Of a stretch of DNA of 64,000 nt, positions 6,802 to 38,401 are shown piece after piece. The DNA is from Hyalangium minutum. GTDB taxonomy: Bacteria; Myxococcota; Myxococcia; Myxococcales; Myxococcaceae. Both the position numbers and the translations under genes were made by a program. The stretch covers positions 806,001 to 870,000 of the forward strand of contig NZ_JMCB01000001.1 in the NCBI RefSeq assembly GCF_000737315.1. Reading direction: 5' to 3'. The notes under the pieces are model-generated. The model had not been told where the DNA came from. It saw nothing but the letters and a program-made list of their open reading frames with translations, and made no database searches. The stretch's first letter is position 1, and every line of letters begins with the position of its first letter.

Positions 6802-8264
6802 TGAGGCCCGGCCGTCCCGAAGATTCCTCCCCTGAGGACCGGCCCGAGCCCTCGCACCGGCGCGATCCCCGCCTCGATCACTGGGAGAACAACCCCTGGG
6901 GACCCTGGCCCCATGGCCGCGGCCCTCACGCCCGCTGGCACCGGGGCCACCGCCCCCACGGCCCCTGGTACCGGACGCGCCTGGGCCGCTATCTCCATGC
7001 CCGGCTGCACCGGCGGATCTTCGTCTGGTTCGGGCTCTCCATCTTCATCACGGGCGTCGCCGTGGCCACGGTGATCAACCTGGTGGGAGGTTCCTCCTGG
7101 CGGCAGAACGTCGACCAGGTGCGCACCTTCACCAGCAACCGCTTCGCTGAGGTGTGGGACGATCCCCAGCAACGGGACGCGCTCGTGCAGGGCATCGCCC
7201 GCGACCTGAGCGTGGACCTGGAGCTGCACGACGCCACCGGAGCGCTGATTCGCCGCGCGGGCGCCGCCTGCGACACTCCAGACTACTCCATCCCCGTGGT
7301 CCGCTCGGGCGTCCTGCTGGGCACGGTGGAGGCCTGCTACTTCCGCAACCGGCCCCGCCGCGCCTGGAACTTCATCGCGCCCCTGCTGCTCATGGGCGTC
7401 ATGCTGTGGACGCTCTCGGGGACCATCGCCCGGAGGCTCACCCGGCCCATGGATGCGCTCGTCCGTGCTGCCGCGGGTCTGGGAGCGGGCAAGCTGGCGA
7501 CCCGTGTCCAGATGACCCCGGGCGCCACGGACGAGATGGGCCTGCTGGCCGCGGCCTTCAACGACATGGCCGCCCGCATCGAGCGCCAGATGGCGGACCA
7601 GCGCGAGCTGCTCGCCGCCGTGTCCCACGAGCTGCGCACCCCGCTGGCCCACCTGCGCGTCCTCACCGAGATCCTCCGGGACAGCGGCGGAGATCCGAAG
7701 ACACTCGACAACGTGGACCGCGAGGTGGTCGAGCTGGATGCACTGGTGGGTGAGCTGCTGGCCAGCTCGCGGCTGGACTTCGGGCAGGTGACGCTCCGTC
7801 CGCTCGACTCCAAGGAGCTGGCCTCCCGAGCACTGCAGCGGACCGGGCTGCCCGCGGAGCTGCTGGCGGTGGAGGTCTCGGACACCGCGCTGGTGGCCGA
7901 TGCGACGCTGCTGGGCCGGGCGCTCGCCAACCTCCTGGAGAACGCGCGCAAGCATGGCCAGGGCGCCGAGGCGCTGCGCATCTTCGAGCACGAGGGCCGG
8001 CTGGCCTTCTGCGTGGACGATCGCGGCCCTGGGCTGCAGCCGGGCGAGGAGACACGCATCTTCCAGCCCTTCTACCGGAAGGACCGGGGCGCCGAGGCCC
8101 GCGAGGCGGGCTCACTGGGGTTGGGACTGGCGCTGGTGCAGCGCATCGCGAAGGCCCACGGTGGCGACGTGTTCGCGGAGAACCGTCCCGGTGGAGGCGC
8201 TCGGGTGGGCTTCAGCGTCCAGCGGGAAGGTCCGCCCGCCGTAGCTGCCCCGACTCCAGCGTGA
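6798..8264 (+). CDS. Sensor histidine kinase (2 TM, HAMP, HisKA, HATPase)
   Basis: Two TM segments, HAMP LTRPMDAL...DEMGLLAAAFNDMA, H-box AAVSHELRTPL, ALANLLENARKHG, GLGLGLALV. Start overlaps the regulator stop. Confidence 0.93.
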   Translation: MMRPGRPEDSSPEDRPEPSHRRDPRLDHWENNPWGPWPHGRGPHARWHRGHRPHGPWYRTRLGRYLHARLHRRIFVWFGLSIFITGVAVATVINLVGGSSWRQNVDQVRTFTSNRFAEVWDDPQQRDALVQGIARDLSVDLELHDATGALIRRAGAACDTPDYSIPVVRSGVLLGTVEACYFRNRPRRAWNFIAPLLLMGVMLWTLSGTIARRLTRPMDALVRAAAGLGAGKLATRVQMTPGATDEMGLLAAAFNDMAARIERQMADQRELLAAVSHELRTPLAHLRVLTEILRDSGGDPKTLDNVDREVVELDALVGELLASSRLDFGQVTLRPLDSKELASRALQRTGLPAELLAVEVSDTALVADATLLGRALANLLENARKHGQGAEALRIFEHEGRLAFCVDDRGPGLQPGEETRIFQPFYRKDRGAEAREAGSLGLGLALVQRIAKAHGGDVFAENRPGGGARVGFSVQREGPPAVAAPTPA

Positions 8265-9729
8265 GCGGCGGGCAGTACGGACCTGACTCGCTCCGCTTCC
8301 AATACGCGCCCGTGCTCCGCCACTCGGAGAGGTCCGTGAAGCGGTAGTCGAACGAGCGCGTGCGCACGAAGCGTGGCGGCGTTTCCGGGAACGGATCCTC
8401 CCGGAAGAACCCCCGCGCCACCGCGTCGCCCTTCAGGAGCTGCTCCTGAAGGCGAATCAGCCACCGGTTGTCCACACAGCGCGAGAGCGAGGCGAACCAC
8501 ATCTGCCAGTCGAGCCGCGGTTGGTGTGGCGCCACGAAGCGGGGAGCCTCATCCACCGGGCCGGGACGCCACCGCAGGAGGTACTCGTGCCAGGTCTGCC
8601 CGTCGGCGCTGCCCTCGAGGACGATCTCCTTCCGCTCCGTGGTCATCACCGCGAAGAGGCCATAGGTGTTCACGCTGCGCAGGCTCGCGGTCTCGCCCAG
8701 CGCCCAGCTCAGCGGTGAGGGCAAGGGGGTGCGGCTCACCCGCTGCACGTCCGAGGCCAGCGCCAGGACGCAGTACATGACCGCGAAGCCCCAGAACCCA
8801 GCGGTCCGCTGGCTCTGGAAGCGATGGACTGGCGCCGGCACGGGCGAGAGCCTCTGGAAGGGCCTCCACCTCGCCAGTACCCCGTCATCGAGCGCGGAGA
8901 GGCACAGCACGATCGTCAGGAGGTTGAAGAACCCGTAGTTGCCCGTGCCGAGGATGCCCAGCTGCAAGGCGATGAGCGCCCCTGCCGCCACGAGCCGCAC
9001 GCGCCTGGGCCCGAAGAGGAGAAACGGCGCCACGAGCTCGATGACGAACATCACCGCCACGCCCGCGCGGTGGAGCACCGCCGGGAGCTGCCAGACGAAA
9101 TACGCGACAGGGTTGGGGAGCGGCTGGGTCCAGTAGTGGAACTCGAGCGCCGTGAGGCTGCGCCACACCGCATCCCCGCTGGCCAGCTTCACTACGCCGG
9201 ACATGAACATCAGCCGGAACAGCAGGAAGCGCACGAGCAGGATCGGCCCGAGGCGGGGCTCTGGGACACTCGTGGAGGGACGCAGCCGTCCAGGAGCCAG
9301 CGGCACGGAGACGATGGCGGCCTCCAACAGCAGCACGTCCCACTGGTAGCTGAGGAAGACGCCACCCACGGAGGTGAGCGACAGGTAGCAGGCCCACGCG
9401 CCAATGAGCGCCCAGCGCGGCGCCACATCCACCAGAACCAGAACACCGCACGCCAGGCCCGCGAGCCCCACGGCCCACAGGCCGCCCTCTCCTGCCCCGG
9501 TAAGCCAGAGCAGCGTGGGCAGGCGGAAGTACCGCTCGGGCCCGAGCTCCAGCCGGGCCCACTCGAGCCACGCGGCCGCGGGCTCCAGGCCCTGCGGCCC
9601 CATCAGCCCCGAGAGCTGGGGCAACAGCGAGGCGAAGGCGATGCAGAAGATCAGCCCGAGCCCGCGCAGGTACAGCCAGCGGACCCGGGCCAGGCCCCTC
9701 CCAGCCTCGCGCCCCGCTTTCACGCTCAC
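8212..9729 (-). CDS. Lipase maturation factor (LMF1) family membrane protein
   Basis: FLSYQWDVLLLE, FRLMFMSGVVKLASGD, HYWTQPLPNP, LGILGTGNYGFFNLL, NTYGLFAVMT, PHQPRLDWQMWF are LMF1 family motifs. Confidence 0.88.
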   Translation of the reverse strand: MSVKAGREAGRGLARVRWLYLRGLGLIFCIAFASLLPQLSGLMGPQGLEPAAAWLEWARLELGPERYFRLPTLLWLTGAGEGGLWAVGLAGLACGVLVLVDVAPRWALIGAWACYLSLTSVGGVFLSYQWDVLLLEAAIVSVPLAPGRLRPSTSVPEPRLGPILLVRFLLFRLMFMSGVVKLASGDAVWRSLTALEFHYWTQPLPNPVAYFVWQLPAVLHRAGVAVMFVIELVAPFLLFGPRRVRLVAAGALIALQLGILGTGNYGFFNLLTIVLCLSALDDGVLARWRPFQRLSPVPAPVHRFQSQRTAGFWGFAVMYCVLALASDVQRVSRTPLPSPLSWALGETASLRSVNTYGLFAVMTTERKEIVLEGSADGQTWHEYLLRWRPGPVDEAPRFVAPHQPRLDWQMWFASLSRCVDNRWLIRLQEQLLKGDAVARGFFREDPFPETPPRFVRTRSFDYRFTDLSEWRSTGAYWKRSESGPYCPPLTLESGQLRRADLPAGR

Positions 9730-9739
9730 ACCCGAGGGC

Positions 9740-10552
9740 CTAGCCCTTGTCGGTGCCGGTGAACTCGAAGGAGGCCTCGGCGGTCTCGCCGTCCTTCACC
9801 GTCACCTCGGCCGTCTTCGTGCCGAACGTCTCGTGCCACGCCTCCAGCGTGTACGTGCCAGCCGGGAGCGCGTTGAGGGTGAAGCTGCCGTCCTCGCCCG
9901 TGGTGGCGAAGTACGGGTGCGAGCTCACGGCGATGTACGAGCGCATCCACGGATGCACGTCGCACTTGAGCGTGACGAGCTCGGTGTCGGACGGCGCGGG
10001 CTTGGTCACCGGCGGCATGGACGGCGGCTGGGCCAGGTTGAAGATGGGCTTGGTGCCCGCCATGGCGCGCACGTTGTGCAGCGTCCCATCGCTGTTCTTC
10101 ACCTGGATGGGCTGGCCGGCCTGGGCGCCCGTCACGCGCGGCAGGTAGGTGCACTTCACCTGATCAATCACCACCGGGGTGCTCGGGGCCGCCGGAGCGC
10201 CCGCCACGGGGCCCTTCACGCGCACCAGCACGTTCTGGAGCTTGCCGTCCTTCACCAGCACCGCAGGCTCCTTCTGCGCCATGCCCTCGCAGGCCGGATC
10301 CGCACTTGCGGGGATGTCCGCCGGGGCTGGGGCCGTACCGGTGAACTTCACCACACCCTTGATGGTGCTCTTGCCCGCGGGCGCCGGAGGCGTCTGCGCC
10401 TGCGTGGCCTCGGGGGGGGTGGGCTTGCCCTGCTCCGTCGGGGTGGGGGCCGTGGGCGTCGTGGGCTTGGACGCCTCGTCCTTCGTGCAGGCAGGCAGGA
10501 CCGCCAGGCTCGCCGCACCGATCAGGGTGAGGCCGAACGTGCGCAGCTTCAT
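9740..10552 (-). CDS. Lipoprotein with cupredoxin-like (type-1 copper) domain and carboxypeptidase-regulatory-like C-terminal domain
   Basis: Lipobox VLPAC; Pro/Thr linker; NSDGTLHNV plus KCDVHPWM (His...Cys-x2-His-x2-Met); TTGEDGSFTLNALPAGTYTLEAWH beta-sandwich. Confidence 0.7.
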   Translation of the reverse strand: MKLRTFGLTLIGAASLAVLPACTKDEASKPTTPTAPTPTEQGKPTPPEATQAQTPPAPAGKSTIKGVVKFTGTAPAPADIPASADPACEGMAQKEPAVLVKDGKLQNVLVRVKGPVAGAPAAPSTPVVIDQVKCTYLPRVTGAQAGQPIQVKNSDGTLHNVRAMAGTKPIFNLAQPPSMPPVTKPAPSDTELVTLKCDVHPWMRSYIAVSSHPYFATTGEDGSFTLNALPAGTYTLEAWHETFGTKTAEVTVKDGETAEASFEFTGTDKG

Positions 10553-10583: not shown

Positions 10584-11468
10584 CTAGACAGCCGGGCCTC
10601 GGTCGAGCATCAGCGCGATGAAGAGGCCCGTGAGATAGAGCAGAGAGTAGAAGAACGTCTGCCGGGCCCAAGGCTTTCCCATCTGCTTGAAGAAACCCCA
10701 CGCCCCGAGCCCCAAGAAGGTGAGCCCCAGCGCCACGGCCACCAGCAGGTACCACGGCCCGGCGATGTGCAGCTGGTACGGCAGCAGCGTCATCGGCACC
10801 AGCGCCACCACATAGAGGACGATCTGCGCCCGGCTGGACTCATCCCCGCGCTCGATGGGCACGGACTTGAGCCCCGCCGCCGCGTACTCCTCCTTGCGGA
10901 ACAGGGCGATGGCCAGGAAGTGGGGCATCTGCCACAGAAAGAGGATGGAGAAGAGGACGAAGCCCCCGGTGTCCAGCTGCCCGGTGACGGCCGTCCATCC
11001 CATCAGCGGCGGCAGCGCGCCCGGCACGGCGCCCACAATCATCGCCGCCGAGGTGCGCGCCTTGAGCGGCGTGTACACGAGCACGTAGCTCAGGAAAGCC
11101 AGCAGGCCCAGCGCCGCCGTGAGCACGTTGGCCCCCAGGGCCAGCGCCGGCAGGGAGACGCCCACCAGCGACAGGCCGAACCACAGCGCCACGCCCGGCT
11201 CCATGCGCCCGGAGGGCAGCGGCCGGTTGTGCGTGCGCGCCATGAAACGGTCGCTCTGCCGCTCGATGTAGCAGTTGAGCGTGTTGGCGGCGGCCACGGT
11301 TCCGGCGGTGGCCAACATCGTCACCAGCACCCGGGCGACGGACAGCTCACCGGGAGCCAGGAAGACGCCCCCCGCGGTGGTCGCCAGCACCAGGCTCGAC
11401 AGCCTGGGCTTCGTCAGGGAGATCAGATCCGACGCAGTCGTCGAAAGGGACACGGCTCGCGCGCTCAC
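10584..11468 (-). CDS. cyoE: Protoheme IX farnesyltransferase (heme O synthase)
   Basis: LTKPRL, NTLNCYIERQSDRFMARTHNRPLPSG, YTPLKART, GAVPGALPPLMGW, LWQMPHFLAIA. GTG start behind AGGAG. Confidence 0.93.
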   Translation of the reverse strand: MSARAVSLSTTASDLISLTKPRLSSLVLATTAGGVFLAPGELSVARVLVTMLATAGTVAAANTLNCYIERQSDRFMARTHNRPLPSGRMEPGVALWFGLSLVGVSLPALALGANVLTAALGLLAFLSYVLVYTPLKARTSAAMIVGAVPGALPPLMGWTAVTGQLDTGGFVLFSILFLWQMPHFLAIALFRKEEYAAAGLKSVPIERGDESSRAQIVLYVVALVPMTLLPYQLHIAGPWYLLVAVALGLTFLGLGAWGFFKQMGKPWARQTFFYSLLYLTGLFIALMLDRGPAV

Positions 11469-11572
11469 ACAATCTCCTGGGGTGGGGCTCGGGCAGCCCC
11501 GCCCCTTACCCGCATCCCACGCGGACGGCAAGCCGCGTGTATCAGCTCTGCTTTTCGCAGACAGCGGGGCGC

Positions 11573-13948
11573 CTACCCTCCCGAGGCCAGGCGCTGCAGC
11601 TCCGGGGCGTGCTCGCCCTTGGGCTCGATCTTCAGGTACTCCTGCGCCAGCATCTTGACCTTGTCGCCCTGCTTGCGGTCCTTGCTGAGCATGGTGGCGT
11701 AGAAGTAGTAGGCCGGCCCGTAACCGCCGTTGGCCTCGATGGCCTTCTGGAAGGAGTCCTCGGCCTTGGCCGTGTCGCCCTTGCCCACGTAGACGCGGCC
11801 CAGCTCGGTGAGCGCCAGCGCAGCCCGGTCAGGCTGGCCGATGAACTCCTGGACGGCCTTGTCCAGCTGCTCCTTGGCCTTGTCCCAGTCGGAGCGCTCC
11901 CGGTAGATGGTGCCCATGGCGAGGCGGGCCTCGGGGTTCTTGGCCTTCGGATCCTTCACCGCGCGCTGGTACTGGGCGAGCGCCTCGTCCAGCTTGCCCT
12001 GGCGCTGGTAGGCCTGGCCGAGCATCAACACCAGCTTGGGGCTGTCGCCCATCGTCTTGAGAGCGGTGGTGAGCGCCTCGGCGGCCTCCTTCTCGCCGCC
12101 CTGCTTGGCCATGAGCGCCTTGGCCAGCTCCACGTAGAGCTGGGCGCGCGTGGGGTCCACCTTGATGGCCTCGCGGATGGCGGAGACGGCCTGATCAGCC
12201 TGGCCCTCGAGCAGCAGCCTGCGGCCCTTGATGAGGAACAGCTCCGGGTTGGTCTTGTCGAGCGCGAAGCCATCCTTCTCGGCCTTGTCCAGCATGGTGC
12301 GCGCCGCGGCCTTGTCCACCGGGACGCCCGTGGCCTCGGAGAGCTTCTGCTGAATGTCCGGCTTGAGGGTGTCCATGGCCAGGGAGACGCGGCTGATCAG
12401 CAGCGAGCGCGCCAGCTGCGCGGTGGCCAGCTGCCGCGGCGAGGGCGGCGGATCGGCCTCCAGCAGCTTCTTGAGCATCTTCGAGGCCAGCTCGTAGAGA
12501 TCCAGGCCCGGCGTCTCCTGGTCCAGCATCAGCAGCGACTTGCCGAGCATGGACTCGGGGTGGTCCTTCTCGTAGCGAAGGGCGAAGTCGTACTTCTGCC
12601 AGGCGGTGTTGTCCTGGCCGAGCCGGCGGTACACGGCACCCAGGCTGGCGTAGATGCGCGGATCATCCGGAGACAGGCCCTGCGCCTTGTCCAGGCTGTC
12701 GCGGGAACGGTCCAGGTCGCCGGCGTTCATCTGCGCCAGGCCCAGCGTGAGGTACAGGAGGGAGCTGGCCTTGCCCTGCGCGTCGAAGGCCTTCACGCGC
12801 TCTTCGAGCTCGCCCAGGGCATCCTTGCCCTTGCCGCCGTACGTCTTGATGAGGGCCTCGGCGGCGTACAGGTGGGAGCTGACCTCGCCTCCCTTCTTGG
12901 CGGCGTCCAGGTGCTCCTCGGCCTTGCGGCGCGCGTCGTCACCGCCACCGTGCTCGCCCCAGCGGATGGCCCAGGCATAGGCCAGGTAGCCGTGCGCGGC
13001 GGTGGAGTCCGGGAACACCTCGAGCGCCTTGTCCGCCTGCTCCACGGCCTTCTTGTACGAGTCGAAGGAGTCGTGCTTGAGCTGCTCGGTGGCGCCGTCC
13101 AGGTGCTTCTTGAACTCGCGGTTGAGCTCCTTCATGTGCCGCGAGTACGCGTAGTACCCGCCGATGGAGAGCACTGCGGCCACGAAGAGGCCCAGGGTGA
13201 TGTACTTGCTCGAGCCGCCCTGCTTCCCGCGGCGCTTCGAGCCGACATCATCGTCATCATCGTCGTCCACTTCATCGACGACGACGGGGCGGCGCGGCTG
13301 CGGACGGGGCTGAGCGGCCGGGCTGGGCTGCGGCGCGGGAATGGCACGACCCGCGGGAGAGGACACGCGGGGCGCCGCCGCGGGGTTCGGATTCGCGACG
13401 GGCGCGGGCGCGGCCACCGGTGCCTGAGCCACGGGAGCGGCCGTCACCGGAGCCTGAGCGACAGGCGCGGCCACCGGGGCGGCCACGGGCGCGGGCGCCG
13501 GGGCTGGAGCGGCAGCCTTGGGCTGCTCCACCTTGTACTGCTGCATCAAGGCGAGCGTCTCCGAGTCGGTCGGATCCGCCTCGAAGGCCTTCAGGAGGTT
13601 GGACTTGCCGGGCTCGGCCTCGCCGGTCTTCAGCTGCAGCATGCCCACCATGCGGAGGGCTGCCTTGTCGGCAGGCTGGACCTGGAGGCCACCGAGTGCC
13701 TCCTCGAGGGCCTTCTTGTCCTTGCCCTGCTGGAGGTACACGCGGGCAAGCAGGAGTCGGGGATCGGCCGCGTTGGGATGGGCTTTGACGCCCTTCTTGC
13801 AGACGACCATCGCCTCCATGAAGCGGCCCATGCCCAGATACGCCTCGGCGAGCGGCTTGTAAGCATCGGACGACGGGTCTGCGGCGAACGCGTGCTCGAG
13901 CTTCGCGAGCTCGGCCGGGCTCAACGTCTTCAAGGGAGAGGTAGACAT
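11573..13948 (-). CDS. Single-pass membrane TPR protein (TPRs on both sides of the membrane)
   Basis: N-terminal TPRs (PLAEAYLGMGRFMEA), Pro/Ala linker, acidic run, basic residues, TM YITLGLFVAAVLSIGGYYAY, then many TPRs. Start MSTSPLKT at 13948. Confidence 0.85.
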   Translation of the reverse strand: MSTSPLKTLSPAELAKLEHAFAADPSSDAYKPLAEAYLGMGRFMEAMVVCKKGVKAHPNAADPRLLLARVYLQQGKDKKALEEALGGLQVQPADKAALRMVGMLQLKTGEAEPGKSNLLKAFEADPTDSETLALMQQYKVEQPKAAAPAPAPAPVAAPVAAPVAQAPVTAAPVAQAPVAAPAPVANPNPAAAPRVSSPAGRAIPAPQPSPAAQPRPQPRRPVVVDEVDDDDDDDVGSKRRGKQGGSSKYITLGLFVAAVLSIGGYYAYSRHMKELNREFKKHLDGATEQLKHDSFDSYKKAVEQADKALEVFPDSTAAHGYLAYAWAIRWGEHGGGDDARRKAEEHLDAAKKGGEVSSHLYAAEALIKTYGGKGKDALGELEERVKAFDAQGKASSLLYLTLGLAQMNAGDLDRSRDSLDKAQGLSPDDPRIYASLGAVYRRLGQDNTAWQKYDFALRYEKDHPESMLGKSLLMLDQETPGLDLYELASKMLKKLLEADPPPSPRQLATAQLARSLLISRVSLAMDTLKPDIQQKLSEATGVPVDKAAARTMLDKAEKDGFALDKTNPELFLIKGRRLLLEGQADQAVSAIREAIKVDPTRAQLYVELAKALMAKQGGEKEAAEALTTALKTMGDSPKLVLMLGQAYQRQGKLDEALAQYQRAVKDPKAKNPEARLAMGTIYRERSDWDKAKEQLDKAVQEFIGQPDRAALALTELGRVYVGKGDTAKAEDSFQKAIEANGGYGPAYYFYATMLSKDRKQGDKVKMLAQEYLKIEPKGEHAPELQRLASGG

Positions 13949-14036: not shown

Positions 14037-14065
14037 TTGACAGCCTCGCAGGGGTTCGGTATCTG
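14037..14065 (+). promoter_or_regulatory. Candidate sigma-70 promoter for tRNA-Ala
   Basis: TTGACA-N17-TATCTG about 65 nt upstream of the tRNA. Confidence 0.45.
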
Positions 14066-14130: not shown

Positions 14131-14206
<76 letters not shown>

Positions 14207-14216
14207 AGAAGGACAG

Positions 14217-14246
14217 AGGGCCTCACTGGAGACAGTGAGGCCCTTT
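14217..14246 (+). terminator. Terminator after tRNA-Ala
   Basis: AGGGCCTCACTG-GAGA-CAGTGAGGCCCT followed by TT. Confidence 0.7.
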
Positions 14247-14273
14247 GCATTTGGGCCACAAGCAAATTGCAAA
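14244..14273. promoter_or_regulatory. AT-rich imperfect inverted repeat upstream of the chaperone module
   Basis: TTTGCATTTG-N9-CAAATTGCAAA ending 27 nt before ATG 14301. Confidence 0.3.
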
Positions 14274-14300
14274 GGTCGCCGGCTTTGTTATCCGGGGCCG

Positions 14301-14903
14301 ATGACCGAACAGCCGTCGCTTTCGTTCTTCGCCCGCCTCTGGCTCGCGTTCCTCTGCTTCTGGCGGGTGCTCTTCTCGCGCCCCTTCGCCCAGGCCGTCC
14401 ATCCGCTGAGCCAGGCGTATGACGCTGGGACGCTGGGTGCGGGTTCCCCCACCCCGGCCCTGCCCAAGCCCGAGCCCACGCCGGTGAAGGTGGCGCCTCC
14501 GCCCGTGCTGCCTCCCGAGCGGGAGCACGCCTCGGCGCTCGTGCTGCTGTCCATGCTCCAGCGAGAGGGCCGACTGATCGACTTCCTCCAGGAGAACGTG
14601 GCCAGCTTCCCGGACGCGGATGTGGGCGCGGCCGCGCGCATCGTCCACGAGGGCTGCCGCAAGGTGGTCCAACAGTACCTGTCGCTCAAGCCGGTGATGA
14701 CCGAAGGCGAGGGCGCCCGGGTGACGGTGCCCGCAGGCTTCGATGCGCAGCGCATCCGCCTGACGGGAAACGTGGCGGGCCAGCCCCCGTTCGCCGGCTC
14801 GCTCAAGCATCAGGGATGGGTGACGACGGAGGTGAAGTTCCCCACCGTGAGCCCAGCGTTGGACCCGCGCGTGCTGGCCCCCGCTGAGGTCGAGCTGAGC
14901 TGA
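14301..14903 (+). CDS. DUF2760-like protein; candidate divergent GrpE-like nucleotide-exchange factor
   Basis: Amphipathic N-helix FFARLWLAFLCFWRVLF; LLSMLQREGRLIDFLQE...DVGAAARIVHEGCRKV; C-terminal GFDA...HQGW...RVLAPAEVEL. The DUF name is recalled, not searched. Confidence 0.75.
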   Translation: MTEQPSLSFFARLWLAFLCFWRVLFSRPFAQAVHPLSQAYDAGTLGAGSPTPALPKPEPTPVKVAPPPVLPPEREHASALVLLSMLQREGRLIDFLQENVASFPDADVGAAARIVHEGCRKVVQQYLSLKPVMTEGEGARVTVPAGFDAQRIRLTGNVAGQPPFAGSLKHQGWVTTEVKFPTVSPALDPRVLAPAEVELS

Positions 14904-14934
14904 GCCTTCACTCTGAGAGGAGCTGACGCCGTCT

Positions 14935-16788
14935 ATGGCCCGCTACGCGATCGGGATCGATCTGGGCACCACGCACTGCGCGGTGTCGTACTTCAACCTC
15001 GAGGAGGGCAAGCCCCGGGGCTCGGCCCAGTCCATGCTGCCCATTCCGCAGCTGACGGCCCCCGGCACGGTGGAGGCCCGCACGCTGCTGCCCTCCTTCC
15101 TCTACCTGCCGAGCGAGCAGGAGTTCCCTGCCGGGAGCTTGGGGCTGCCGTGGAAGCCGGACGCCACGACGTTCGCGGGCGAGTTCGCCCGAGCGCATGG
15201 CGCCAAGGTGCCGACGCGGCTGGTGTCCTCGGCGAAGAGCTGGCTGAGCCACCCGGGTGTGGATCGGCGCTCGGCGATGCTGCCATGGCAGGCGCCACCC
15301 GAAGTGCAGCGGGTGTCTCCGCTGGAGGCCTCGGCGCGCTACCTCCGTCATATGCGGGAGGCGTGGGACCACACGTTTGCCCGGTCTCGGGAGGAGGCGG
15401 GCAACGCGCTGGCGCAACAGGATGTGATCATCACGGTTCCGGCCTCGTTCGACGCGGCGGCGCGTGAGCTGACGCTGGAGGCGGCCCAGGCGGCGGGGAT
15501 CCCGAACATCACCCTGCTGGAGGAACCGCAGGCCGCGCTGTACGCGTGGCTGGAGGCCCAGGGTGAAGGGTTCCGCAAGCGGGTGAAGCCGGGCGAGGTC
15601 ATCCTGGTGGTGGACGTGGGCGGCGGCACGTCGGACTTCTCCGTCATTACGGTGCGGGAGCGCGACGGTGAGGTGGAGCTGGTGCGCGTGGCTGTGGGCG
15701 ACCACATCCTGCTGGGCGGCGACAACATGGACCTGGCGCTGGCGCACACGCTGAACCAGCGGCTGGCCGCCGAGGGCAAGAAGCTGGATCCGTGGCAGTT
15801 CAACGCGCTGACCTACGGTTGCCGCCAGGCGAAGGAGACGCTGTACGGAGATCCGAAGCTGGCGAAGGCGCCCATCTCCATTCCGGGCCGTGGCTCGTCG
15901 CTCATCGGCGGGACGCTGCGCACGGAATTGCCTCGCGAGGAGCTGGACCGGCTGCTCACGGACGGCTTCTTCCCCGTGATGCCGGTGACGGAGCTGCCGC
16001 GCACGGCACGGCGCACGGGTCTGGCACAGATGGCACTGCCGTACGCGCAGGATGCCGGGGTGACGCGGCACCTGGCGGCGTTCCTCACCCGGCAGGCGCA
16101 GGCGCTCGCGTCCTCTCCGGACTCACCGGTGAATGTGGGGGGCAAGTCCTTCCTCCACCCCACGGCGGTGCTCTTCAACGGAGGCGTCTTCAAGGCGGGG
16201 CCGCTCAAGGCCCGCGTCATGGAGGTGCTGAACGGGTGGCTGACGGCGGACGGCGGGCAGCCCGCACAGGAGCTGGCGGGGGCGGACCTGGACCTGTCGG
16301 TGGCGCGCGGCGCGGCGTACTACGGGTGGGTGCGCCAAGGGCACGGCCTGCGGATTCGCGGTGGCACGGCTCGGGCGTATTACGTGGGGGTGGAAACGGC
16401 CATGCCTGCGGTGCCCGGCATGGAGCCTCCGGTGAAGGCGCTCTGTGTGGCGCCCTTCGGCATGGAGGAAGGGACCCAGGCCGACGTTCCGCCGCAGGAG
16501 TTCGGCCTCGTCACGGGTGAGCCCACGCAGTTCCGGTTCTTCGTCTCATCGGTCCGACGCGACGACAAGGTGGGCAACATGATCGACGACGTGGCCGGCC
16601 GGGACGATCTGGAGGAGCTGGCGCCCATCGAGACGAGCCTGCCGGGTCAGCCTCAGCCCTTTGGGGACCTGACGCCAGTGAACTTGCAGGCGGCGGTGAC
16701 AGAGGTGGGAACCCTGGAGCTGCGCTGCCTGGAGAAGAATGGCCCCGGCCGCTGGAAGCTGGAGCTCAACGTGCGCATGAAGGAGTAA
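14935..16788 (+). CDS. Atypical Hsp70-family ATPase (A)
   Basis: IGIDLGTTHC, VSSAKSWL, ITVPASFD, LEEPQAA, VDVGGGTSDF, LGGDNMD, VARGAAYYG. No canonical DnaK substrate-binding domain or lid sequence is recognisable. Confidence 0.92.
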   Translation: MARYAIGIDLGTTHCAVSYFNLEEGKPRGSAQSMLPIPQLTAPGTVEARTLLPSFLYLPSEQEFPAGSLGLPWKPDATTFAGEFARAHGAKVPTRLVSSAKSWLSHPGVDRRSAMLPWQAPPEVQRVSPLEASARYLRHMREAWDHTFARSREEAGNALAQQDVIITVPASFDAAARELTLEAAQAAGIPNITLLEEPQAALYAWLEAQGEGFRKRVKPGEVILVVDVGGGTSDFSVITVRERDGEVELVRVAVGDHILLGGDNMDLALAHTLNQRLAAEGKKLDPWQFNALTYGCRQAKETLYGDPKLAKAPISIPGRGSSLIGGTLRTELPREELDRLLTDGFFPVMPVTELPRTARRTGLAQMALPYAQDAGVTRHLAAFLTRQAQALASSPDSPVNVGGKSFLHPTAVLFNGGVFKAGPLKARVMEVLNGWLTADGGQPAQELAGADLDLSVARGAAYYGWVRQGHGLRIRGGTARAYYVGVETAMPAVPGMEPPVKALCVAPFGMEEGTQADVPPQEFGLVTGEPTQFRFFVSSVRRDDKVGNMIDDVAGRDDLEELAPIETSLPGQPQPFGDLTPVNLQAAVTEVGTLELRCLEKNGPGRWKLELNVRMKE

Positions 16789-16812
16789 GAAGCACCGCGG
16801 CACGGGAGGCTT

Positions 16813-19590
16813 ATGCGCATCATCGGCATCGATCTGGGTACCACCCACTGCGCGGTCGCATCTGTGGACCCCGCCAAGGGTCCCAGCGCGCCCATCGAGG
16901 ACTTTCCCATCCCCCAGCTCGTCCGGCAGGGAGAGGTGGCTCCACGCTCGCTGCTACCCTCGTGCATCTATGTCCCCGCTGGCCATGAGCTCGCCGGCGA
17001 GTCGCTGAAGCTGCCCTGGGGCGACGCGGGGCCCAACGTGGTCGGTGAGTTCGCTCGCTGGCAAGGCGCTCGGGTTCCCGGCCGTCTCGTCGCCTCCGCG
17101 AAGAGCTGGCTGTGCCACCCCGGCGTGGACCGCTCCGCTCCCATCCTCCCCTGGGGTGGCCCCGCCGACGTCGCCAAGCTCTCGCCTGTCGAGGCCAGCG
17201 CCCTCCTGCTCTCACACATGGCCCGGGCCTGGAACTTCGCGCACCCGGACGCCCCTCTCGCGCAGCAAGAGGTCGTCATCACCGTCCCCGCCTCCTTTGA
17301 TGAGGCGGCCCGTGCGCTCACCGTGAGCGCGGCGCGCAAAGCGGGCCTGGAGAAGTTCACCCTCGTCGAGGAGCCCCAGGCCGCGTTCTACGACTACACC
17401 GCGCGCCATCGCACGGATCTGGCCAAGGTGCTCGCCAACGTGCGCCTCGTGCTCGTGGTGGACGTGGGCGGCGGCACCACGGACTTCACCCTCGTCCACG
17501 CCGGGGTCTCTCCGGAAGGGCCCATGCTGCGGCGGCTCGCCGTCGGTGAGCACCTGATGCTCGGCGGCGACAACATGGATGCCGCGCTCGCCCGCCGCGT
17601 GGAGGAGAAGCTCTTCTCCGACGGCCGGCGCCTCTCCGCCACCCAGTGGACCCAGGCCATCCAGGCTGCCCGTACCGCCAAGGAGGCCCTGCTCGGCCCC
17701 AACCCTCCCGAGCGCTACGGCGTTTCCCTCGTGGCCGAGGGCAGCCGGCTCCTCGGTGGCTCGCTGTCCACCGAGCTGATGCGCTCCGAAGCAGAGGATC
17801 GGGTCCTCGATGGCTTCTTCCCCAAGTCCCCCCCCACGGACAGGCCTCGGCGCGCGGCCCGCATGGCTCTCCAGGAGCTGGGCCTGCCTTACGCCCAGGA
17901 CGCTGCAGTCACTCGCCACCTCGCCGCCTTCCTCGGACAACACGCGGCGGCGGGCTTCTCGGCGCTCGGGGAGACGGCTCCTTCCGAAGGCGCCCTGCCC
18001 CGCCCCGATGCCATCCTCCTCAACGGCGGCGTCTTCAACTCGCCCCGCATCTCCGAGCGGCTGGTGGACGCCATCTCCGCATGGTGGCCCAACACCCCTC
18101 GCATCCCCCTGCTGCGCCACGACTCCCTGGAGAAGGCCGTCGCGCGCGGGGCCGCCTACTACGGACTCGTTCGGCGCGGCCACGGTCTGCGCATCGGTGG
18201 CGGCGCGGCCCGCGCCTACTACGTAGGCCTGGAGCGCCCCGCCGACAGCGGTGAGCAGCCTGTCCTCTGCCTCATCCCCCGCGGCTTCGAGGAGGGCCAG
18301 TCAGTAGACCTGGGCGAGCGCCCCTTCACCCTCACCCTCGGGCGGCCGGTGCAGTTCACCCTGTACTCGACCACCAGCGACCGGATCGACAAGCCGGGAG
18401 ACATCGTCCCCCTCGCCGAGGACCTCAAGCCCCTGCCGCCCATCCACACGCTCCTCAAGGGCGCCTCGGGGAAGACGGCGGAGGTGCCCGTGCACCTGCG
18501 CGCCGCGCTCACCGAGATTGGCACCCTGGAGCTGTTCTGCGTCTCCAACGTCGCGGACGAGCGCTGGCGGCTCGAGTTCGAGCTGCGCGGCTCAGGCTCG
18601 GGCCAGGACATCACCGTCACCGAGTCCATGCCCGCCCGCTTCGCCGAGGCGAAGGAGAACGTCGAGCGCGTCTACGGCAACAAGCCGCTGCCCATCGGCC
18701 CCAAGGACGTGAAGCAGCTCTCCAAGACGCTCGAGAAGGTGCTCGGCCCGCGCGAGTCCTGGCGCGTCCCCGTGCTCCGTGAGCTGTGGAGCTCCCTCTT
18801 CGCGGGCGCCAGCAAGCGCCGCCGCACGGCCGACCACGAGCGCGTCTTCTACAGCCTCGCGGGCTACACGCTCCGCCCTGGCTTCGGCTATCCGCTGGAC
18901 CACTGGCGCGCCGAGCAGACTTTCGGCCTCTTCGATCAGCTCGTGCAGTTCCACACGGACAAGGCCGTCTGGATCGAGTTCTGGGTCATGTGGCGCCGCA
19001 TCTCCGGCGGCCTCACGGAAGCGCAGCAGGCCAAGCTCTGGGCTTACCTGGAGCCCCACCTCGCCCGCCGCGTGCCTCCGGACGCGCCTCCCGGCGGCAA
19101 GCTCAAGGGCATCGTGCCCGAGGGCCTCGAAGAGATGGTGCGCGCCGCCGCCTCGCTGGAGCATCTGCCCGCCTCGGACAAGACGAAGCTCGGAGGTTGG
19201 ATCGCCGCCCGGCTCAAGGACGAGGCCAAGTCTGGAGGCCCCTGGGCGTGGTCGCTCGGGCGGCTCGGGGCTCGCGTGCCCCTCTACGGCAGCAGCCACA
19301 AGGTGGTGGCCATCGACACCGCCGAGGCGTGGCTCACGCTCCTCTTGGATTTGGATCTGCGCCGCATCGACGGAGCCCCCTTCGCGGCGGCTCAGCTCGC
19401 GCGGCTCACCGGCGACCGCACCCGGGACATCGATCCCGCCCTGCGCGCTCGCACGGCCCAGGCTCTCACCGCGGCCCAGGCCTCCGAGGCCTGGGTGCGG
19501 ATGGTGAACGAGGTGCTCGCGCTCGAGGCTGCTGACGAGGCCCGGGCCCTGGGCGATACCCTGCCCGCGGGCCTCCGCCTCTCCCTGTAG
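16813..19590 (+). CDS. Atypical Hsp70-family ATPase (B) with about 320-aa Trp-rich helical C-terminal extension (DUF3731-like)
   Basis: Same nucleotide-binding-domain motifs as A (IGIDLGTTHC, EEPQAA, DVGGGTTDF, LGGDNMD, VARGAAYYG), plus a C-terminal domain with LRPGFGYPLDHWR, EFWVMWRRISGGL, WAWSLGRLGARVPLYG. Confidence 0.92.
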   Translation: MRIIGIDLGTTHCAVASVDPAKGPSAPIEDFPIPQLVRQGEVAPRSLLPSCIYVPAGHELAGESLKLPWGDAGPNVVGEFARWQGARVPGRLVASAKSWLCHPGVDRSAPILPWGGPADVAKLSPVEASALLLSHMARAWNFAHPDAPLAQQEVVITVPASFDEAARALTVSAARKAGLEKFTLVEEPQAAFYDYTARHRTDLAKVLANVRLVLVVDVGGGTTDFTLVHAGVSPEGPMLRRLAVGEHLMLGGDNMDAALARRVEEKLFSDGRRLSATQWTQAIQAARTAKEALLGPNPPERYGVSLVAEGSRLLGGSLSTELMRSEAEDRVLDGFFPKSPPTDRPRRAARMALQELGLPYAQDAAVTRHLAAFLGQHAAAGFSALGETAPSEGALPRPDAILLNGGVFNSPRISERLVDAISAWWPNTPRIPLLRHDSLEKAVARGAAYYGLVRRGHGLRIGGGAARAYYVGLERPADSGEQPVLCLIPRGFEEGQSVDLGERPFTLTLGRPVQFTLYSTTSDRIDKPGDIVPLAEDLKPLPPIHTLLKGASGKTAEVPVHLRAALTEIGTLELFCVSNVADERWRLEFELRGSGSGQDITVTESMPARFAEAKENVERVYGNKPLPIGPKDVKQLSKTLEKVLGPRESWRVPVLRELWSSLFAGASKRRRTADHERVFYSLAGYTLRPGFGYPLDHWRAEQTFGLFDQLVQFHTDKAVWIEFWVMWRRISGGLTEAQQAKLWAYLEPHLARRVPPDAPPGGKLKGIVPEGLEEMVRAAASLEHLPASDKTKLGGWIAARLKDEAKSGGPWAWSLGRLGARVPLYGSSHKVVAIDTAEAWLTLLLDLDLRRIDGAPFAAAQLARLTGDRTRDIDPALRARTAQALTAAQASEAWVRMVNEVLALEAADEARALGDTLPAGLRLSL

Positions 19591-19612
19591 CGGCGAGCAG
19601 ATCCCTCCCGGC

Positions 19613-19634
19613 AGGTTGGAGGTGACTCCAACCT
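19613..19634. terminator. 9-bp hairpin between convergent genes
   Basis: AGGTTGGAG-GTGA-CTCCAACCT. Confidence 0.45.
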
Positions 19635-19660
19635 CAGAGGGAATCAAAGCCTTTGGGCGC

Positions 19661-24600: not shown

Positions 24601-26757
24601 ATGCGCGGCCCCGCTCCCACTTCTGCCTTTGACGCGACGCGTGCGGCCCATCGGCGGGCGTGGCCGGGGGTGCTGTGCCTGACCGTCCTCTCGCTGACAG
24701 TGGCCTGCATCGATGGGGAACCCTCGGAGCCTGTGCCGCCTCCCCCAGAAAACCCAGATGGGGGTGGATGCCAGCCGAAGACGTGTCAGCAGCTCGGCTT
24801 CGACTGCGGCGAAGTGGCCAGTGACGGATGCGGAGGAACGCTGAACTGCGGCACGTGCGTGGCCCCCTCCACATGCGGAGGCGGAGGCAAAGCCAACGTG
24901 TGCGGCTGCAAGCCCCGCACGCAGTGCACCTTCGAAGAGGGCGAGTGCGGCGTCGCGCCTGACGGCTGCGGTGGGTTCGTCTCCTGCGGCACGTGCCCGG
25001 AGCCGGAGGTCTGTGGCGCGCGAGGCCAGGCCAACACGTGCGGCATCCCCTCCGCCGAGCGCTATTGCACCGTGGATGGCTGGTGCTGGGAGTACCCGCT
25101 GCCGCACGGCAACACGATCTATGGCGCGCACTTCCGCGCGGCGGATGACGGGTGGGCGGTGGGCGAGGAGGGGCACGTCCAGCACTGGGATGGAACGAAG
25201 TGGTCCCAGGTGACCAGCGGGACACTCGCCCCGCTGCGCGGCGTGCATGCGACGGCAGCGAATGACGTGTGGGCCGTGGGCGACACGGGCACGCTGCTGC
25301 GCAACCAGGGCAGCGGCTTCCAGAAGCTGGACGCGGGCACGCCTCAGAACCTGCTGTCCGTGTGGGCCGCGAGCGTGGCGGACGTGTGGACGGTGGGCGC
25401 CAAGGGCACGCTGCTGCGCAACCAGGGCAGTGGCTTCCAGAAGCTGGACGCGGGCACCGCGAGGGACGTGCGAGACGTGTGGGGCAGCGGCCCGAACGAT
25501 GTCTGGATGGTGGGCAACGCGGGCCTGGTCATGCGCCATGACGGCAGCGGCCTGACCACCGTGAGCACCTCTTCGCTGGATGGAGGCGTCTCCGAGGATC
25601 TCTACGAGGTGACGGGCACGGGTCCGCAGGACGTGTGGGCGGTGACCTCGGATGACCCCTGCCTCTTCTGCCTGGATTACGGGGCCGTGTACCGGCTCAC
25701 GCCGCAGGGGATGTCGCAGAGCTTCTACGGACCGGATCAGCTGTTCCACATCTTCGCGGCGGCACCGAATCACGTGCTCACGGTGGGCGAGGACTCGCGC
25801 TACCTGTGGAACGGGAACACCTGGCGGGAGACGAGCGTGGGGCGCGATGGCGTCCTCGCAGGCACGGCGCCCGAGGACGTGTGGCTCCTGGGCGCGAATG
25901 GCCTGATCCAGCGGTGGTCCGGCACCTCGTGGACGACGAAGGTGCCGACGCGCCTGCTGGGAGAGGTCCGGGACATCCACGGCAGCTCGGCTACGAACGT
26001 GTGGGCGGTGGACACCGAGGGCAATGCACTGTTCTGGAACGGCGGGGGCTGGCGAGAGCTGAAGGCGGACACGTTCGATGACAACAGCGAGGGCGTCTAT
26101 ACGGCCTCGCCGACGGCCACGTGGGTGGTGTTCGAGGGCATCTCCAGCTCGGACAACGTCATCTATCTCTGGAATGGCACGGCCTTCACGAAGGAACTCG
26201 ATGGGAATGCCAGCAGCCTCTACGGCATCCACGGCTCGTCGGAGACGGACGTGTGGGCCGTGGGTGAGTCCGGCACGGCCTTGCATCGGACAGCGGCCGG
26301 GTGGACGCCGCAGCCGACGGGCGCGGGGGCGACGCTGCACGATGTGTGGGTGAGCCCCGGAATGGCGGTCGCGGTGGGCGACTCGGGCACCATCATGCGG
26401 TGGGACGGAACGGCGTGGACCGGCATGAACTCGGGCACGAGCTCGTCACTGCGCACCGTGTGGGGGAGCAGCCCTACGGACATCTGGGCGGCTGGAGCGG
26501 GTGGCATCCTGCTCCGCTACAACGGGACAGCCTGGCTCCCAGCTTCGAGCGGTACGACGTCCACGCTGAACGCACTGTGGGGTACCGGGCCCGCGGATGT
26601 CTGGGCGGCGGGGGCGGGCGGCACGCTGCTGCACTTCAATGGGACGCAGTGGAGCCGCGTGTCCACGGGCACTCGCCGTGCACTGACTGCAGGGTGGTCC
26701 TCCTCCACCACGGACGTGTGGGTGGGCGGAGACACGGCCATCTTCCACAAGCCCTGA
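24601..26757 (+). CDS. Lipoprotein with Cys-rich repeats and about 14 WD40/YVTN-like beta-propeller blades
   Basis: AGGAGG Shine-Dalgarno; LTVAC lipobox; two 8-Cys units; repeated L-x-x-V-W-G-S-x-x-x-D-V-W-A-V-G blades. Confidence 0.85.
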   Translation: MRGPAPTSAFDATRAAHRRAWPGVLCLTVLSLTVACIDGEPSEPVPPPPENPDGGGCQPKTCQQLGFDCGEVASDGCGGTLNCGTCVAPSTCGGGGKANVCGCKPRTQCTFEEGECGVAPDGCGGFVSCGTCPEPEVCGARGQANTCGIPSAERYCTVDGWCWEYPLPHGNTIYGAHFRAADDGWAVGEEGHVQHWDGTKWSQVTSGTLAPLRGVHATAANDVWAVGDTGTLLRNQGSGFQKLDAGTPQNLLSVWAASVADVWTVGAKGTLLRNQGSGFQKLDAGTARDVRDVWGSGPNDVWMVGNAGLVMRHDGSGLTTVSTSSLDGGVSEDLYEVTGTGPQDVWAVTSDDPCLFCLDYGAVYRLTPQGMSQSFYGPDQLFHIFAAAPNHVLTVGEDSRYLWNGNTWRETSVGRDGVLAGTAPEDVWLLGANGLIQRWSGTSWTTKVPTRLLGEVRDIHGSSATNVWAVDTEGNALFWNGGGWRELKADTFDDNSEGVYTASPTATWVVFEGISSSDNVIYLWNGTAFTKELDGNASSLYGIHGSSETDVWAVGESGTALHRTAAGWTPQPTGAGATLHDVWVSPGMAVAVGDSGTIMRWDGTAWTGMNSGTSSSLRTVWGSSPTDIWAAGAGGILLRYNGTAWLPASSGTTSTLNALWGTGPADVWAAGAGGTLLHFNGTQWSRVSTGTRRALTAGWSSSTTDVWVGGDTAIFHKP
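24769..25044 (+). repeat. Two tandem 46-aa Cys-rich units (8 Cys each)
   Basis: CQPKTCQQLGFDCGEVASDGCGGTLNCGTCVAPSTCGGGGKANVCG and CKPRTQCTFEEGECGVAPDGCGGFVSCGTCPEPEVCGARGQANTCG. Confidence 0.85.
25287..25457 (+). repeat. 54-nt direct repeat (53/54 identical), 117-nt period
   Basis: GGGCACGCTGCTGCGCAACCAGGGCAG[C/T]GGCTTCCAGAAGCTGGACGCGGGCAC at 25287 and 25404. Confidence 0.9.
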
Positions 26758-33123: not shown

Positions 33124-33581
33124 AGCTGTTGGGCCGAGACATCCCCGCGCGTGAGCTGATCACCCGTATCGAGGAGCGCCTGCGCTCGCGAGGCCTCCCC
33201 ACCTCCGAGGCCTCCGAAGTGCCTGAAGAGGGCGTGGAGCCCCGCGTGGACCCGCTGTCCTTCTACCTCCAGTCCCTGGAGGAGCACGCGGACCCCACGC
33301 AGCCGATGCCGCTGCACACGCACCGGGGCGGCGTGGGCCAGCTCGTCGTGGTGGCCAAGTGGGCCTTCCGCAAGACGTGCCAGGTGCTCATCAACGAGAC
33401 GCTCTCCCGCCAGCGCGTCTTCAACGGCCACGTCCGGGATTCCTACGCCCAGCTCTCCGCCGAGGTCCTCCGCCTGCGGCGCGAAGTGGAGGAGCTGAGG
33501 GCCGCCCAGGCGTCCGCCACCCCTCCGCCCGAGCCCCCCATCGTCCCCGTGCGTCCCCGCCGGCCCAAGACCCCCAAGTAG
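33120..33581 (+). CDS. Coiled-coil hypothetical protein in the glycosylation operon
   Basis: ATGA overlap with the upstream stop; THRGGVGQLVVVAKWAFRK...LSRQRVFN...LSAEVLRLRREVEEL. Confidence 0.75.
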   Translation: MKLLGRDIPARELITRIEERLRSRGLPTSEASEVPEEGVEPRVDPLSFYLQSLEEHADPTQPMPLHTHRGGVGQLVVVAKWAFRKTCQVLINETLSRQRVFNGHVRDSYAQLSAEVLRLRREVEELRAAQASATPPPEPPIVPVRPRRPKTPK

Positions 33582-33699
33582 GCTCCCGCCCGCGGGACGA
33601 GCAGGAGGGCAAGGGCCGTCTCCTCTGAGTACGAGCCACTCCGCCCAGCTTGAAGCGCCCGGCACCGGGCGGCTATAGACCCCTCCGAGGCACTCCCAC

Positions 33700-38195: not shown

Positions 38196-38401
38196 ATTCA
38201 CTCCTGGAGATTCTGGAGGCAGGGCGCGCCTTTGTAGCACCCTCGCCCGGCTGGCAGGCGCCCTCATGAAAGCCAGCAGAATCGCTCCCATCGGCCCAGG
38301 CGATGCAGAGTGTCCAGCCTGCTTGCTTTCCGGCCCCCGGGCCGCGAAATAGGCATTCCGCTGGGCTCGTTTTCCCAGGTTAGCCCTGACACCCCCGAGA
38401 T

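Follow-up and report, generated by a model that had tools for sequence, protein, structure and literature searches.

We analysed a 64,000-nt stretch of the Hyalangium minutum genome (contig NZ_JMCB01000001.1, positions 806,001 to 870,000 of the forward strand; G+C ~69%), referred to here in its full length as the window. On its plus strand, the window carries three consecutive open reading frames (ORFs), of which the first, g1, encodes a small protein of the family DUF2760 and the other two, g2 and g3, encode Hsp70-type ATPases (Table 1). A first-pass annotation, made from the letters and an ORF list, had described three co-directional genes separated by only 31 and 24 nt and had read them as a GrpE-like factor encoded together with two non-canonical Hsp70s. 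The ORF list and translations confirmed the arrangement, with the gaps at 14904-14934 and 16789-16812.

The reading frame of g1 is already open from position 14037. We placed its start at the ATG at 14301 because a tRNA-Ala gene occupies the preceding region and because the homologues all start at the same MTEQPS... sequence. Both intergenic gaps contain a purine-rich ribosome-binding site (GAGAGGAG and GGGAGG), and a promoter/terminator consensus scan revealed no plus-strand terminator-like site within either the g1-g2 or the g2-g3 gap. The G+C content at third codon positions (GC3) of g2 and g3 was 0.89-0.90, as expected for genuine genes at this G+C, which supports both as real genes. Long ORFs also cross g2 and g3 on the opposite strand (14908-16071, 17212-18183 and 18592-19647, all minus) and recur in 78 loci of the comparison described below. 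We rejected these as genes and regard them as shadow ORFs that result from high G+C and strong protein conservation.

Rfam reported two tRNAs and no other RNA element in the window. A hairpin with an 11-bp stem lies 3' of the tRNA-Ala gene at 14218-14243 and is followed by TTTGCATTT, which leaves about 57 nt as room for a g1 promoter between the hairpin and the start codon. The consensus scan found no sigma-70 site upstream of g1, and inspection of the leader (14244-14300) by eye revealed no sigma-54, CIRCE or RpoH-type element. Since no sigma-70 site was found, g1-g3 may be transcribed from an unconventional promoter or through read-through from the tRNA. The hairpin downstream of g3, which lacks a U-tract and was missed by the consensus scan, can be read from the sequence as a possible operon terminator.

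Table 1. Genes, protein domains and flanking features of the three-gene locus (positions in the window)
Feature	Positions	Strand	Evidence
tRNA-Ala(CGC), upstream boundary of the module	14131..14206	+	ARAGORN, Rfam
g1, DUF2760 protein, 200 aa	14301..14903	+	Pfam PF10816, homologue-aligned start
g1 N-terminal hydrophobic/amphipathic helix pair, aa 9-41, probable inner-membrane anchor	14325..14423	+	AlphaFold2 (AF2) and alignment
g1 Pro-rich flexible linker, aa 42-72	14424..14516	+	Low predicted local distance difference test (pLDDT) score, no secondary structure (AF2)
g1 DUF2760 alpha/beta core, aa 73-192	14517..14876	+	AF2: three helices, four strands, pLDDT 84-91
g1 C-terminal tail APAEVEL, invariant	14877..14897	+	Family alignment; extended in AF2 model
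g2, Hsp70-type ATPase, 617 aa	14935-16788	+	ORF list, translation
g2 Hsp70-type nucleotide-binding domain (NBD), aa 1-467	14935..16335	+	Pfam HSP70 E 2.5e-18; PDB Hsp70 NBD ~1e-12
g2 conserved linker GLRIRGG and lid-less beta domain, aa 468-617	16336..16785	+	~40% identical to g3 beta domain
g3, Hsp70-type ATPase with DUF3731, 925 aa	16813-19590	+	ORF list, translation
g3 Hsp70-type NBD, aa 1-454	16813..18174	+	Pfam HSP70 E 5.6e-17; PDB DnaK NBD ~1e-10
g3 predicted sandwich resembling the beta part of the substrate-binding domain (SBD-beta), aa 463-605	18199..18627	+	AF2 and Foldseek
g3 all-alpha repeat domain, aa 610-912	18640..19548	+	AF2: 16 helices, most blocks pLDDT > 90
g3 C-terminal motif G-[DE]-[ST]-L-P-x-G-L-x-L	19552..19581	+	Family alignment; disordered in AF2 model
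Hairpin GGTTGGAG-GTGA-CTCCAACC, 24 nt past g3 stop, possible operon terminator	19614..19633	+	Read from sequence

The DUF2760 protein g1

The g1 protein matched the Pfam family DUF2760 (PF10816) at residues 76-198, with an E-value of 9.8e-52 and a score of 174.5 bits against a cut-off of 25, over profile positions 2-124 of 124. It has 4532 homologues, and the representative library held 1907 DUF2760 clusters at 50% identity; the closest named relatives belong to Hyalangium (87% identity). The AF2 model of g1 had a mean pLDDT of 79. In this model, two N-terminal helices (residues 9-25 and 27-41, pLDDT ~90) precede the flexible linker and the alpha/beta core, in which the invariant residues include Q87, R91, D94, F95, R113, H116, H170, G172 and W173. 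The small alpha/beta domain of the model covers residues 73-178, with the extended tail after it.

The two ends of the protein are conserved in different ways. At the N-terminus, the motif FxxRxWLAFxCFFRVLFDGxFA is kept across the DUF2760 family, with a classic transmembrane helix in its place in some members, and the N-terminal region including the linker varies from ~55 to 320 aa among relatives. At the C-terminus, APAE[VI]E[LVI] followed by zero or one residue forms the end of the protein in all 74 of 74 diverse family members. Judged from the sequence and the predicted model, the N-terminal helix most likely anchors g1 in the inner membrane, with the remainder of the protein in the cytoplasm. 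A cytoplasmic location is suggested because positive charges (R22, R27) follow the helix and because the Hsp70 partners carry no signal peptides.

The first-pass annotation had taken this small protein for a GrpE-like factor, which was not borne out by sequence, profile or predicted fold. Pfam returned DUF2760 only, NCBIfam gave no match, and hhalign of a 74-sequence g1-family profile against E. coli GrpE gave a probability of 0.24%. No PDB sequence matched g1, and the search of its AF2 model against PDB folds gave no match either (best E 1.4, probability 0.02), with no GrpE chain among the hits. The search thus gave no indication of the GrpE fold, which consists of a long helix for dimerisation, a four-helix bundle and a beta domain at the C-terminus, and the N-terminal hydrophobic helix and the invariant C-terminal tail of g1 are both absent from GrpE. 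Since none of these tests revealed any likeness to GrpE, a nucleotide-exchange role of g1 is pure conjecture.

We nevertheless weighed the reading of g1 as a nucleotide-exchange factor of the GrpE type that serves an Hsp70 heterodimer. The strict co-encoding of the small protein with both ATPases would suit it, as would the layout of g1, in which helices followed by a small beta-containing domain loosely recall GrpE. It would also suit this reading that tblastn with E. coli GrpE found no match in the window, although a single query makes this a limited test. Set against the DUF2760-only Pfam result, the hhalign value, the lack of any PDB sequence or fold match and the foreign anchor and tail, these points leave the GrpE reading unlikely. 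An equally limited tblastn test, with the J-domain of E. coli DnaJ as its single query, found no match in the window, in agreement with the earlier statement that no J-domain gene is present there.

The two Hsp70-type ATPases

Both g2 and g3 carry an Hsp70-type NBD. Their Pfam HSP70 scores were 66.1 and 61.6 bits, respectively, against a cut-off of 20.6, with matches to the ATPase domain only, and their PDB sequence matches were confined to Hsp70 nucleotide-binding domains. The motifs DLGTT, AKSWL, EEPQAA, DVGGGT and VARGAA, which the first-pass annotation had listed for both proteins, were confirmed in each of them. Moreover, in 63 g2-type and 46 g3-type relatives the ATPase motifs hardly vary (D-L-G-T-T, the K of AKSWL, E-E-P and D-x-G-G-G-T). 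Neither protein qualified as a canonical DnaK or HscA in NCBIfam, where the best scores were 82.7 and 87.3 bits (range 60-87) against cut-offs of 620-1019. The two genes are ancient paralogues.

The regions that follow the NBD depart from DnaK. In the g2 and g3 families, a conserved G-x-R-I-x-G-G stands at the interdomain linker where DnaK has the hydrophobic VLLL, which DnaK requires for J-domain coupling. The AF2 model of g3 residues 452-925, built on a 72-sequence alignment, reached a mean pLDDT of 88.8 and a predicted template-modelling score (pTM) of 0.80, and residues 463-605 were nearly all beta-strand in it. When this segment was compared with the PDB by Foldseek, nearly all of the 50 best hits were substrate-binding domains of Hsp70, DnaK, HscA, BiP or Ssb (probability 0.9-1.0, E 5e-3 to 5e-2, TM-score up to 0.49 on chains that contain SBD-beta only). 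No single E-value passed 1e-3, but so uniform a list is hard to explain by chance. Because the beta domain of g2 is so similar to that of g3, g2 probably also has a divergent SBD-beta-like sandwich; the protein ends at the last beta strand and thus lacks a lid. The earlier claim that neither ATPase has a recognisable peptide-binding domain or lid therefore stands at the level of sequence and for the DnaK lid, but not for the fold, where an SBD-type beta-sandwich is predicted.

In g3, the position of the lid is taken by a helical-repeat domain of ~300 aa. It corresponds to DUF3731 ("DNA-K related protein", PF12531), which Pfam placed at residues 673-923 (E 6.7e-89, 298.5 bits against a cut-off of 25). 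Apart from Hsp70s, the only fold matches of this domain were helical-repeat peptide binders, namely the designed protein 7ue2 and the Pex5 TPR structure 2c0m, and these matches were weak. Many arginine and tryptophan residues are invariant in the DUF3731 alignment. Residues 650-900 of g3 (~18760-19510) are dense in both, with the stretches RRRRSADHER, LRPGFGxPLDxWR, WxxWWxLWRR, GRxGARxP and GDRxRD, and this density points to an anionic ligand, be it lipid head groups, nucleic acid or a phospho-compound, or else to a large interface with another protein. The C-terminal motif of g3 is found in 53 of 72 family sequences, with at most two residues after it; several of the sequences are partial.

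Conservation and genomic context of the three genes

One genome per species was scanned for DUF2760 loci, and at least 563 were confirmed; the counts that follow come from the 80 best. These 80 loci belong to Myxococcota, Verrucomicrobiota, Gamma- and Betaproteobacteria, Methylomirabilis and Bdellovibrionales. In 77 of the 78 loci with enough downstream DNA, a g2-type gene lay 3' of the DUF2760 gene in the same orientation, starting 0-275 nt (median 12) after it. A g3-type gene came next in 49 of 57 loci, and the synteny extends over at least five phylum-level groups. All-against-all clustering of the flanking ORFs in the 80 loci returned the module and shadow ORFs only, with no fourth conserved gene. 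The 106 immediate neighbours contained 108 Pfam families, none of which occurred in more than three loci, and no J-domain or GrpE gene was found nearby. Between Myxococcota and Verrucomicrobiota, the NBD of g2 retains 67-72% identity, a sign of very strong constraint under purifying selection. The first-pass annotation had pictured a dedicated, self-contained module and had proposed profiling the co-occurrence of its genes across bacteria; in this profile, the trio is kept together in several phyla, and the picture of a self-contained module is supported.

The trio was also present on chromosome 2 of Burkholderia cenocepacia, on a conjugative plasmid (110 kb) of Bradyrhizobium barranii and on a Comamonadaceae replicon, in which neighbouring genes of the trio share 4 and 32 nt. 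On a conjugative megaplasmid of Bradyrhizobium sp. CB82 (locus L085, 6743-14357), the trio lies ~1 kb upstream of groES-groEL, and together they possibly form an accessory proteostasis cassette. Two loci are interrupted: in a Verrucomicrobiales metagenome-assembled genome (L018, ~11500-13925), the g3 orthologue is split by ~2.4 kb, and in L060 (10435-13515) g2 and g3 are separated by an insertion of ~3 kb. Mobile elements or assembly artefacts may account for both cases.

A patchy phyletic distribution and a presence on plasmids are also what might be expected of Hsp70-like ATPases that serve in an anti-phage or conflict system. In keeping with this, a two-gene version of DUF2760 and Hsp70 without a DUF3731 gene lies on the Thiodictyon syntrophicum megaplasmid pTs485 (L083, 6695-9213). 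Its neighbours there are a PLD-domain anti-phage protein, a DUF1156 anti-phage-associated protein, a VapC toxin, a Uma2 endonuclease and a TIR-domain protein. This was the only defence-island context among the loci examined, and no defence family recurred among the 106 immediate neighbours (at most one match each in PADLOC), which are housekeeping genes. The module did give weak matches to PADLOC PDC-M61B, but with PADLOC 2.0 these were marginal (1e-5 and 8e-4) and limited to the ATPase core. It gave no match in the phage genome search, and it lacks effector domains of the nuclease, TIR or pore-forming kind. In Hyalangium, the module belongs to the core chromosome, since rpoD and secA are also in the window, and its inheritance appears to be vertical because the flanks are conserved within Archangiaceae. 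A role in defence is thus extremely improbable.

An orthologue of g3 has already been studied genetically. Pan et al. 2021 investigated six Hsp70 paralogues of Myxococcus xanthus DK1622, including MXAN_5323 (PMC8265645). The genome-specific part of their upstream-arm knock-out primer for MXAN_5323 is an exact match to g2 at 16081-16094, 732 nt before the g3 start, and MXAN_5323 is therefore the orthologue of g3, with a g2 orthologue upstream; both proteins are non-canonical Hsp70s of 925 aa. MXAN_5323 was non-essential, and the E. coli dnaK mutant was complemented only by MXAN_3192 and sglK. The ΔMXAN_5323 mutant showed normal motility, predation and fruiting-body formation, with lower sporulation and lower survival of H2O2, and expression of the gene rose with H2O2 and in development (PMC8265645).

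The same paper treats MXAN_5323 as a stand-alone Hsp70, does not mention its neighbouring genes and leaves its domain architecture out of account (PMC8265645). The searchable literature contains no mention of MXAN_5321 or MXAN_5322 and no papers on DUF2760, DUF3731, PF10816 or PF12531. The earlier remark that no function had been characterised for this module thus agrees with the searchable literature, with the qualification that the g3 orthologue has already been knocked out. The M. xanthus stk locus was considered as a possible counterpart and rejected, as it encodes the 540-aa StkA, followed by the SCP2 protein StkB and the 89-aa StkC (PMC4319316).

The knock-out results could be taken to mean that g2 and g3 are stand-alone helper chaperones that work with the housekeeping DnaJ and GrpE, their clustering being a matter of co-regulation only ("helpers", Pan et al. 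2021). The mild sporulation and oxidative-stress defects, which other Hsp70 paralogue mutants share, and the expression raised by H2O2 are consistent with this. However, the VLLL linker is replaced by the conserved GxRIxGG and the lid is absent, and MXAN_5323 was not among the paralogues that rescued the E. coli dnaK mutant (PMC8265645). The near-obligate adjacency to the DUF2760 gene across phyla and the translational overlap argue for a physical complex instead. We consider stand-alone helpers very unlikely.

Proposed role of the module

Hsp70s are normally understood to act only with a J-protein and, in most cases, an exchange factor. We propose that the conserved three-gene operon encodes a dedicated non-canonical Hsp70 machine, a membrane-tethered pair that works without a J-protein or GrpE, and we give this composite model a probability of about 0.5. 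According to this model, the DUF2760 protein would tether and regulate both ATPases at the cytoplasmic face of the inner membrane, where its globular domain and C-terminal tail would dock either onto g3, at the helical-repeat domain, or into the pockets of the beta-sandwiches. The g2 and g3 proteins would act together, and a plausible arrangement, in line with the heterodimer of the first-pass annotation, is contact between the two NBDs as in Hsp70-Hsp110, with one paralogue promoting nucleotide exchange by the other. Without any need for J-proteins or GrpE, this machine would remodel a specific client close to the membrane or extract it. The gene structure, the domain content, the conservation and the synteny were observed; we infer the membrane anchoring, the physical interaction, the division of labour and the client, and most of the uncertainty of the model lies in the details of the interaction and in the client.

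A more specific version of this proposal is tentative and well short of probable. The module may represent a new class of Hsp70s, widespread in Gram-negatives and without J-protein or GrpE, in which the APAEVEL tail of the anchored DUF2760 protein would engage DUF3731 or the beta-sandwich pockets, as in a reversed EEVD-TPR "carboxylate clamp", and would thereby assemble a heterodimeric motor on a membrane-proximal client.

Comparison with known systems shows where the module agrees with them and where it differs. It shares with DnaK-DnaJ-GrpE the intact catalytic motifs, and the domain after the ATPase is predicted to fold like the DnaK SBD, but it has two ATPases instead of one and lacks the VLLL linker, the helical lid, a J-protein and a GrpE homologue. 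E. coli DjlA, mitochondrial Tim44 and Sec63 of the endoplasmic reticulum resemble the DUF2760 protein, as predicted here, in pairing an N-terminal anchor and a cytoplasmic domain with an Hsp70; this likeness is one of architecture only, since DUF2760 contains neither a J-domain nor a Tim44-like domain. The acidic extreme C-terminus of g1 and the helical-repeat domain of g3 may recall the EEVD tail and its TPR co-chaperones (Hop, CHIP). This similarity is a weak analogy with reversed polarity, as the tail would be on the cofactor and the repeat on the Hsp70. E. coli YegD and HscC are likewise divergent Hsp70-fold ATPases. The module gave a weak NCBIfam match of 27-38 bits to the YegD model PRK11678, below its cut-off of 331, and YegD has no such C-terminal domains, whereas HscC has a recognisable SBD and dedicated J-proteins.

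With respect to pairing, the module can be compared with Hsp70-Hsp110 (Sse1/Apg2), where two paralogous Hsp70-fold ATPases, one with an extended C-terminal region, presumably act jointly as they would here. A reading that overlaps with the composite model takes g3 (or g2) mainly as an exchange factor or holdase for its paralogue and the DUF2760 protein as a client or membrane receptor. The co-encoded ancient paralogues, both of which keep their ATP-binding motifs as Hsp110 does, are in line with this. A 2026 review counts the bacterial DnaK derivates as "dark matter" still to be explored and puts forward Hsp110-like roles for them generally (PMC13580251). The hydrophobic, arginine-flanked N-terminus of g1 may, in our own reading of the sequence, resemble a DnaK-binding peptide. 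Yet g2 and g3 are not Hsp110 orthologues, the C-terminus of g3 is a helical repeat (DUF3731) rather than an extended lid, and the existence of loci with g1 and g2 only speaks against this reading, which we regard as unlikely.

Several observations also weigh against the membrane-tethered pair that we favour. First, g3 is not beside g2 in 8 of 57 loci, and it may therefore be dispensable or encoded elsewhere; unrelated genes follow g2 in seven of these loci, and in one, g3 lies upstream on the other strand. The g1 proteins of loci without g3 still end in APAEVEL, and the tail therefore points to neither partner in particular. Second, the SBD-like fold rests on a predicted model for which every Foldseek E-value exceeded 1e-3, a search of the beta-domain profile against PDB sequences found no similarity, and an hhalign comparison between this domain and the SBD of E. 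coli DnaK was likewise negative. Third, the g1 helix contains two conserved arginines and is unusually well conserved for a plain anchor, and it could be a protein-docking or substrate-like element instead. Finally, the phenotype of ΔMXAN_5323 is mild and common to unrelated Hsp70 paralogues, and it therefore offers no hint of a membrane client.

The sequence families themselves are not new, as they comprise two Pfam DUFs, proteins annotated as "Hsp70 family protein" and one published knock-out. What the searchable literature does not describe is the operon as a system and its non-GrpE, probably membrane-anchored partner with the invariant tail. The cryptic SBD-like fold, as predicted here, and the breadth of the conserved synteny are likewise undescribed there.

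The surroundings of the module in the window were also recorded. Its upstream neighbours, on the opposite strand, encode an 850-aa TPR protein, a UbiA prenyltransferase and an LMF1-like protein, and its convergent downstream neighbours encode a 5'-nucleotidase and a phytase. The LMF1-like gene (8212-9729, minus) encodes a 505-aa protein with both lipase maturation factor LMF1 domains (E 4e-54 and 3e-44), which belongs to a family known chiefly from animals, and adjoins the genes for the UbiA prenyltransferase (10584-11531) and a CarboxypepD_reg-domain protein (9740-10552). A glycosyltransferase cluster occupies 30880-35274 (plus); its 747-aa double GT4 protein also matches "GT4-conflict" (E 6e-13) and is followed by a GT2-methyltransferase fusion. 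Three ORFs with coding-type GC3 had no Pfam match, namely 24601-26757 (plus, 718 aa), 35267-36769 (plus, 500 aa) and 36783-38435 (minus, 550 aa), and a 1260-aa ORF at 38402-42184 had a partial Pyr_redox_2 domain as its only match.

The three-gene module spans myxobacteria, Verrucomicrobiota, the Burkholderia cepacia complex, Bradyrhizobium plasmids and other groups. It can be tested directly, since it is present in genetically tractable hosts, namely M. xanthus, with MXAN_5323 and the genes upstream of it, and B. cenocepacia, on chromosome 2. The function of this operon would show whether another set of partners can drive the Hsp70 ATPase cycle, and what a membrane-tethered pair of bacterial Hsp70s does.

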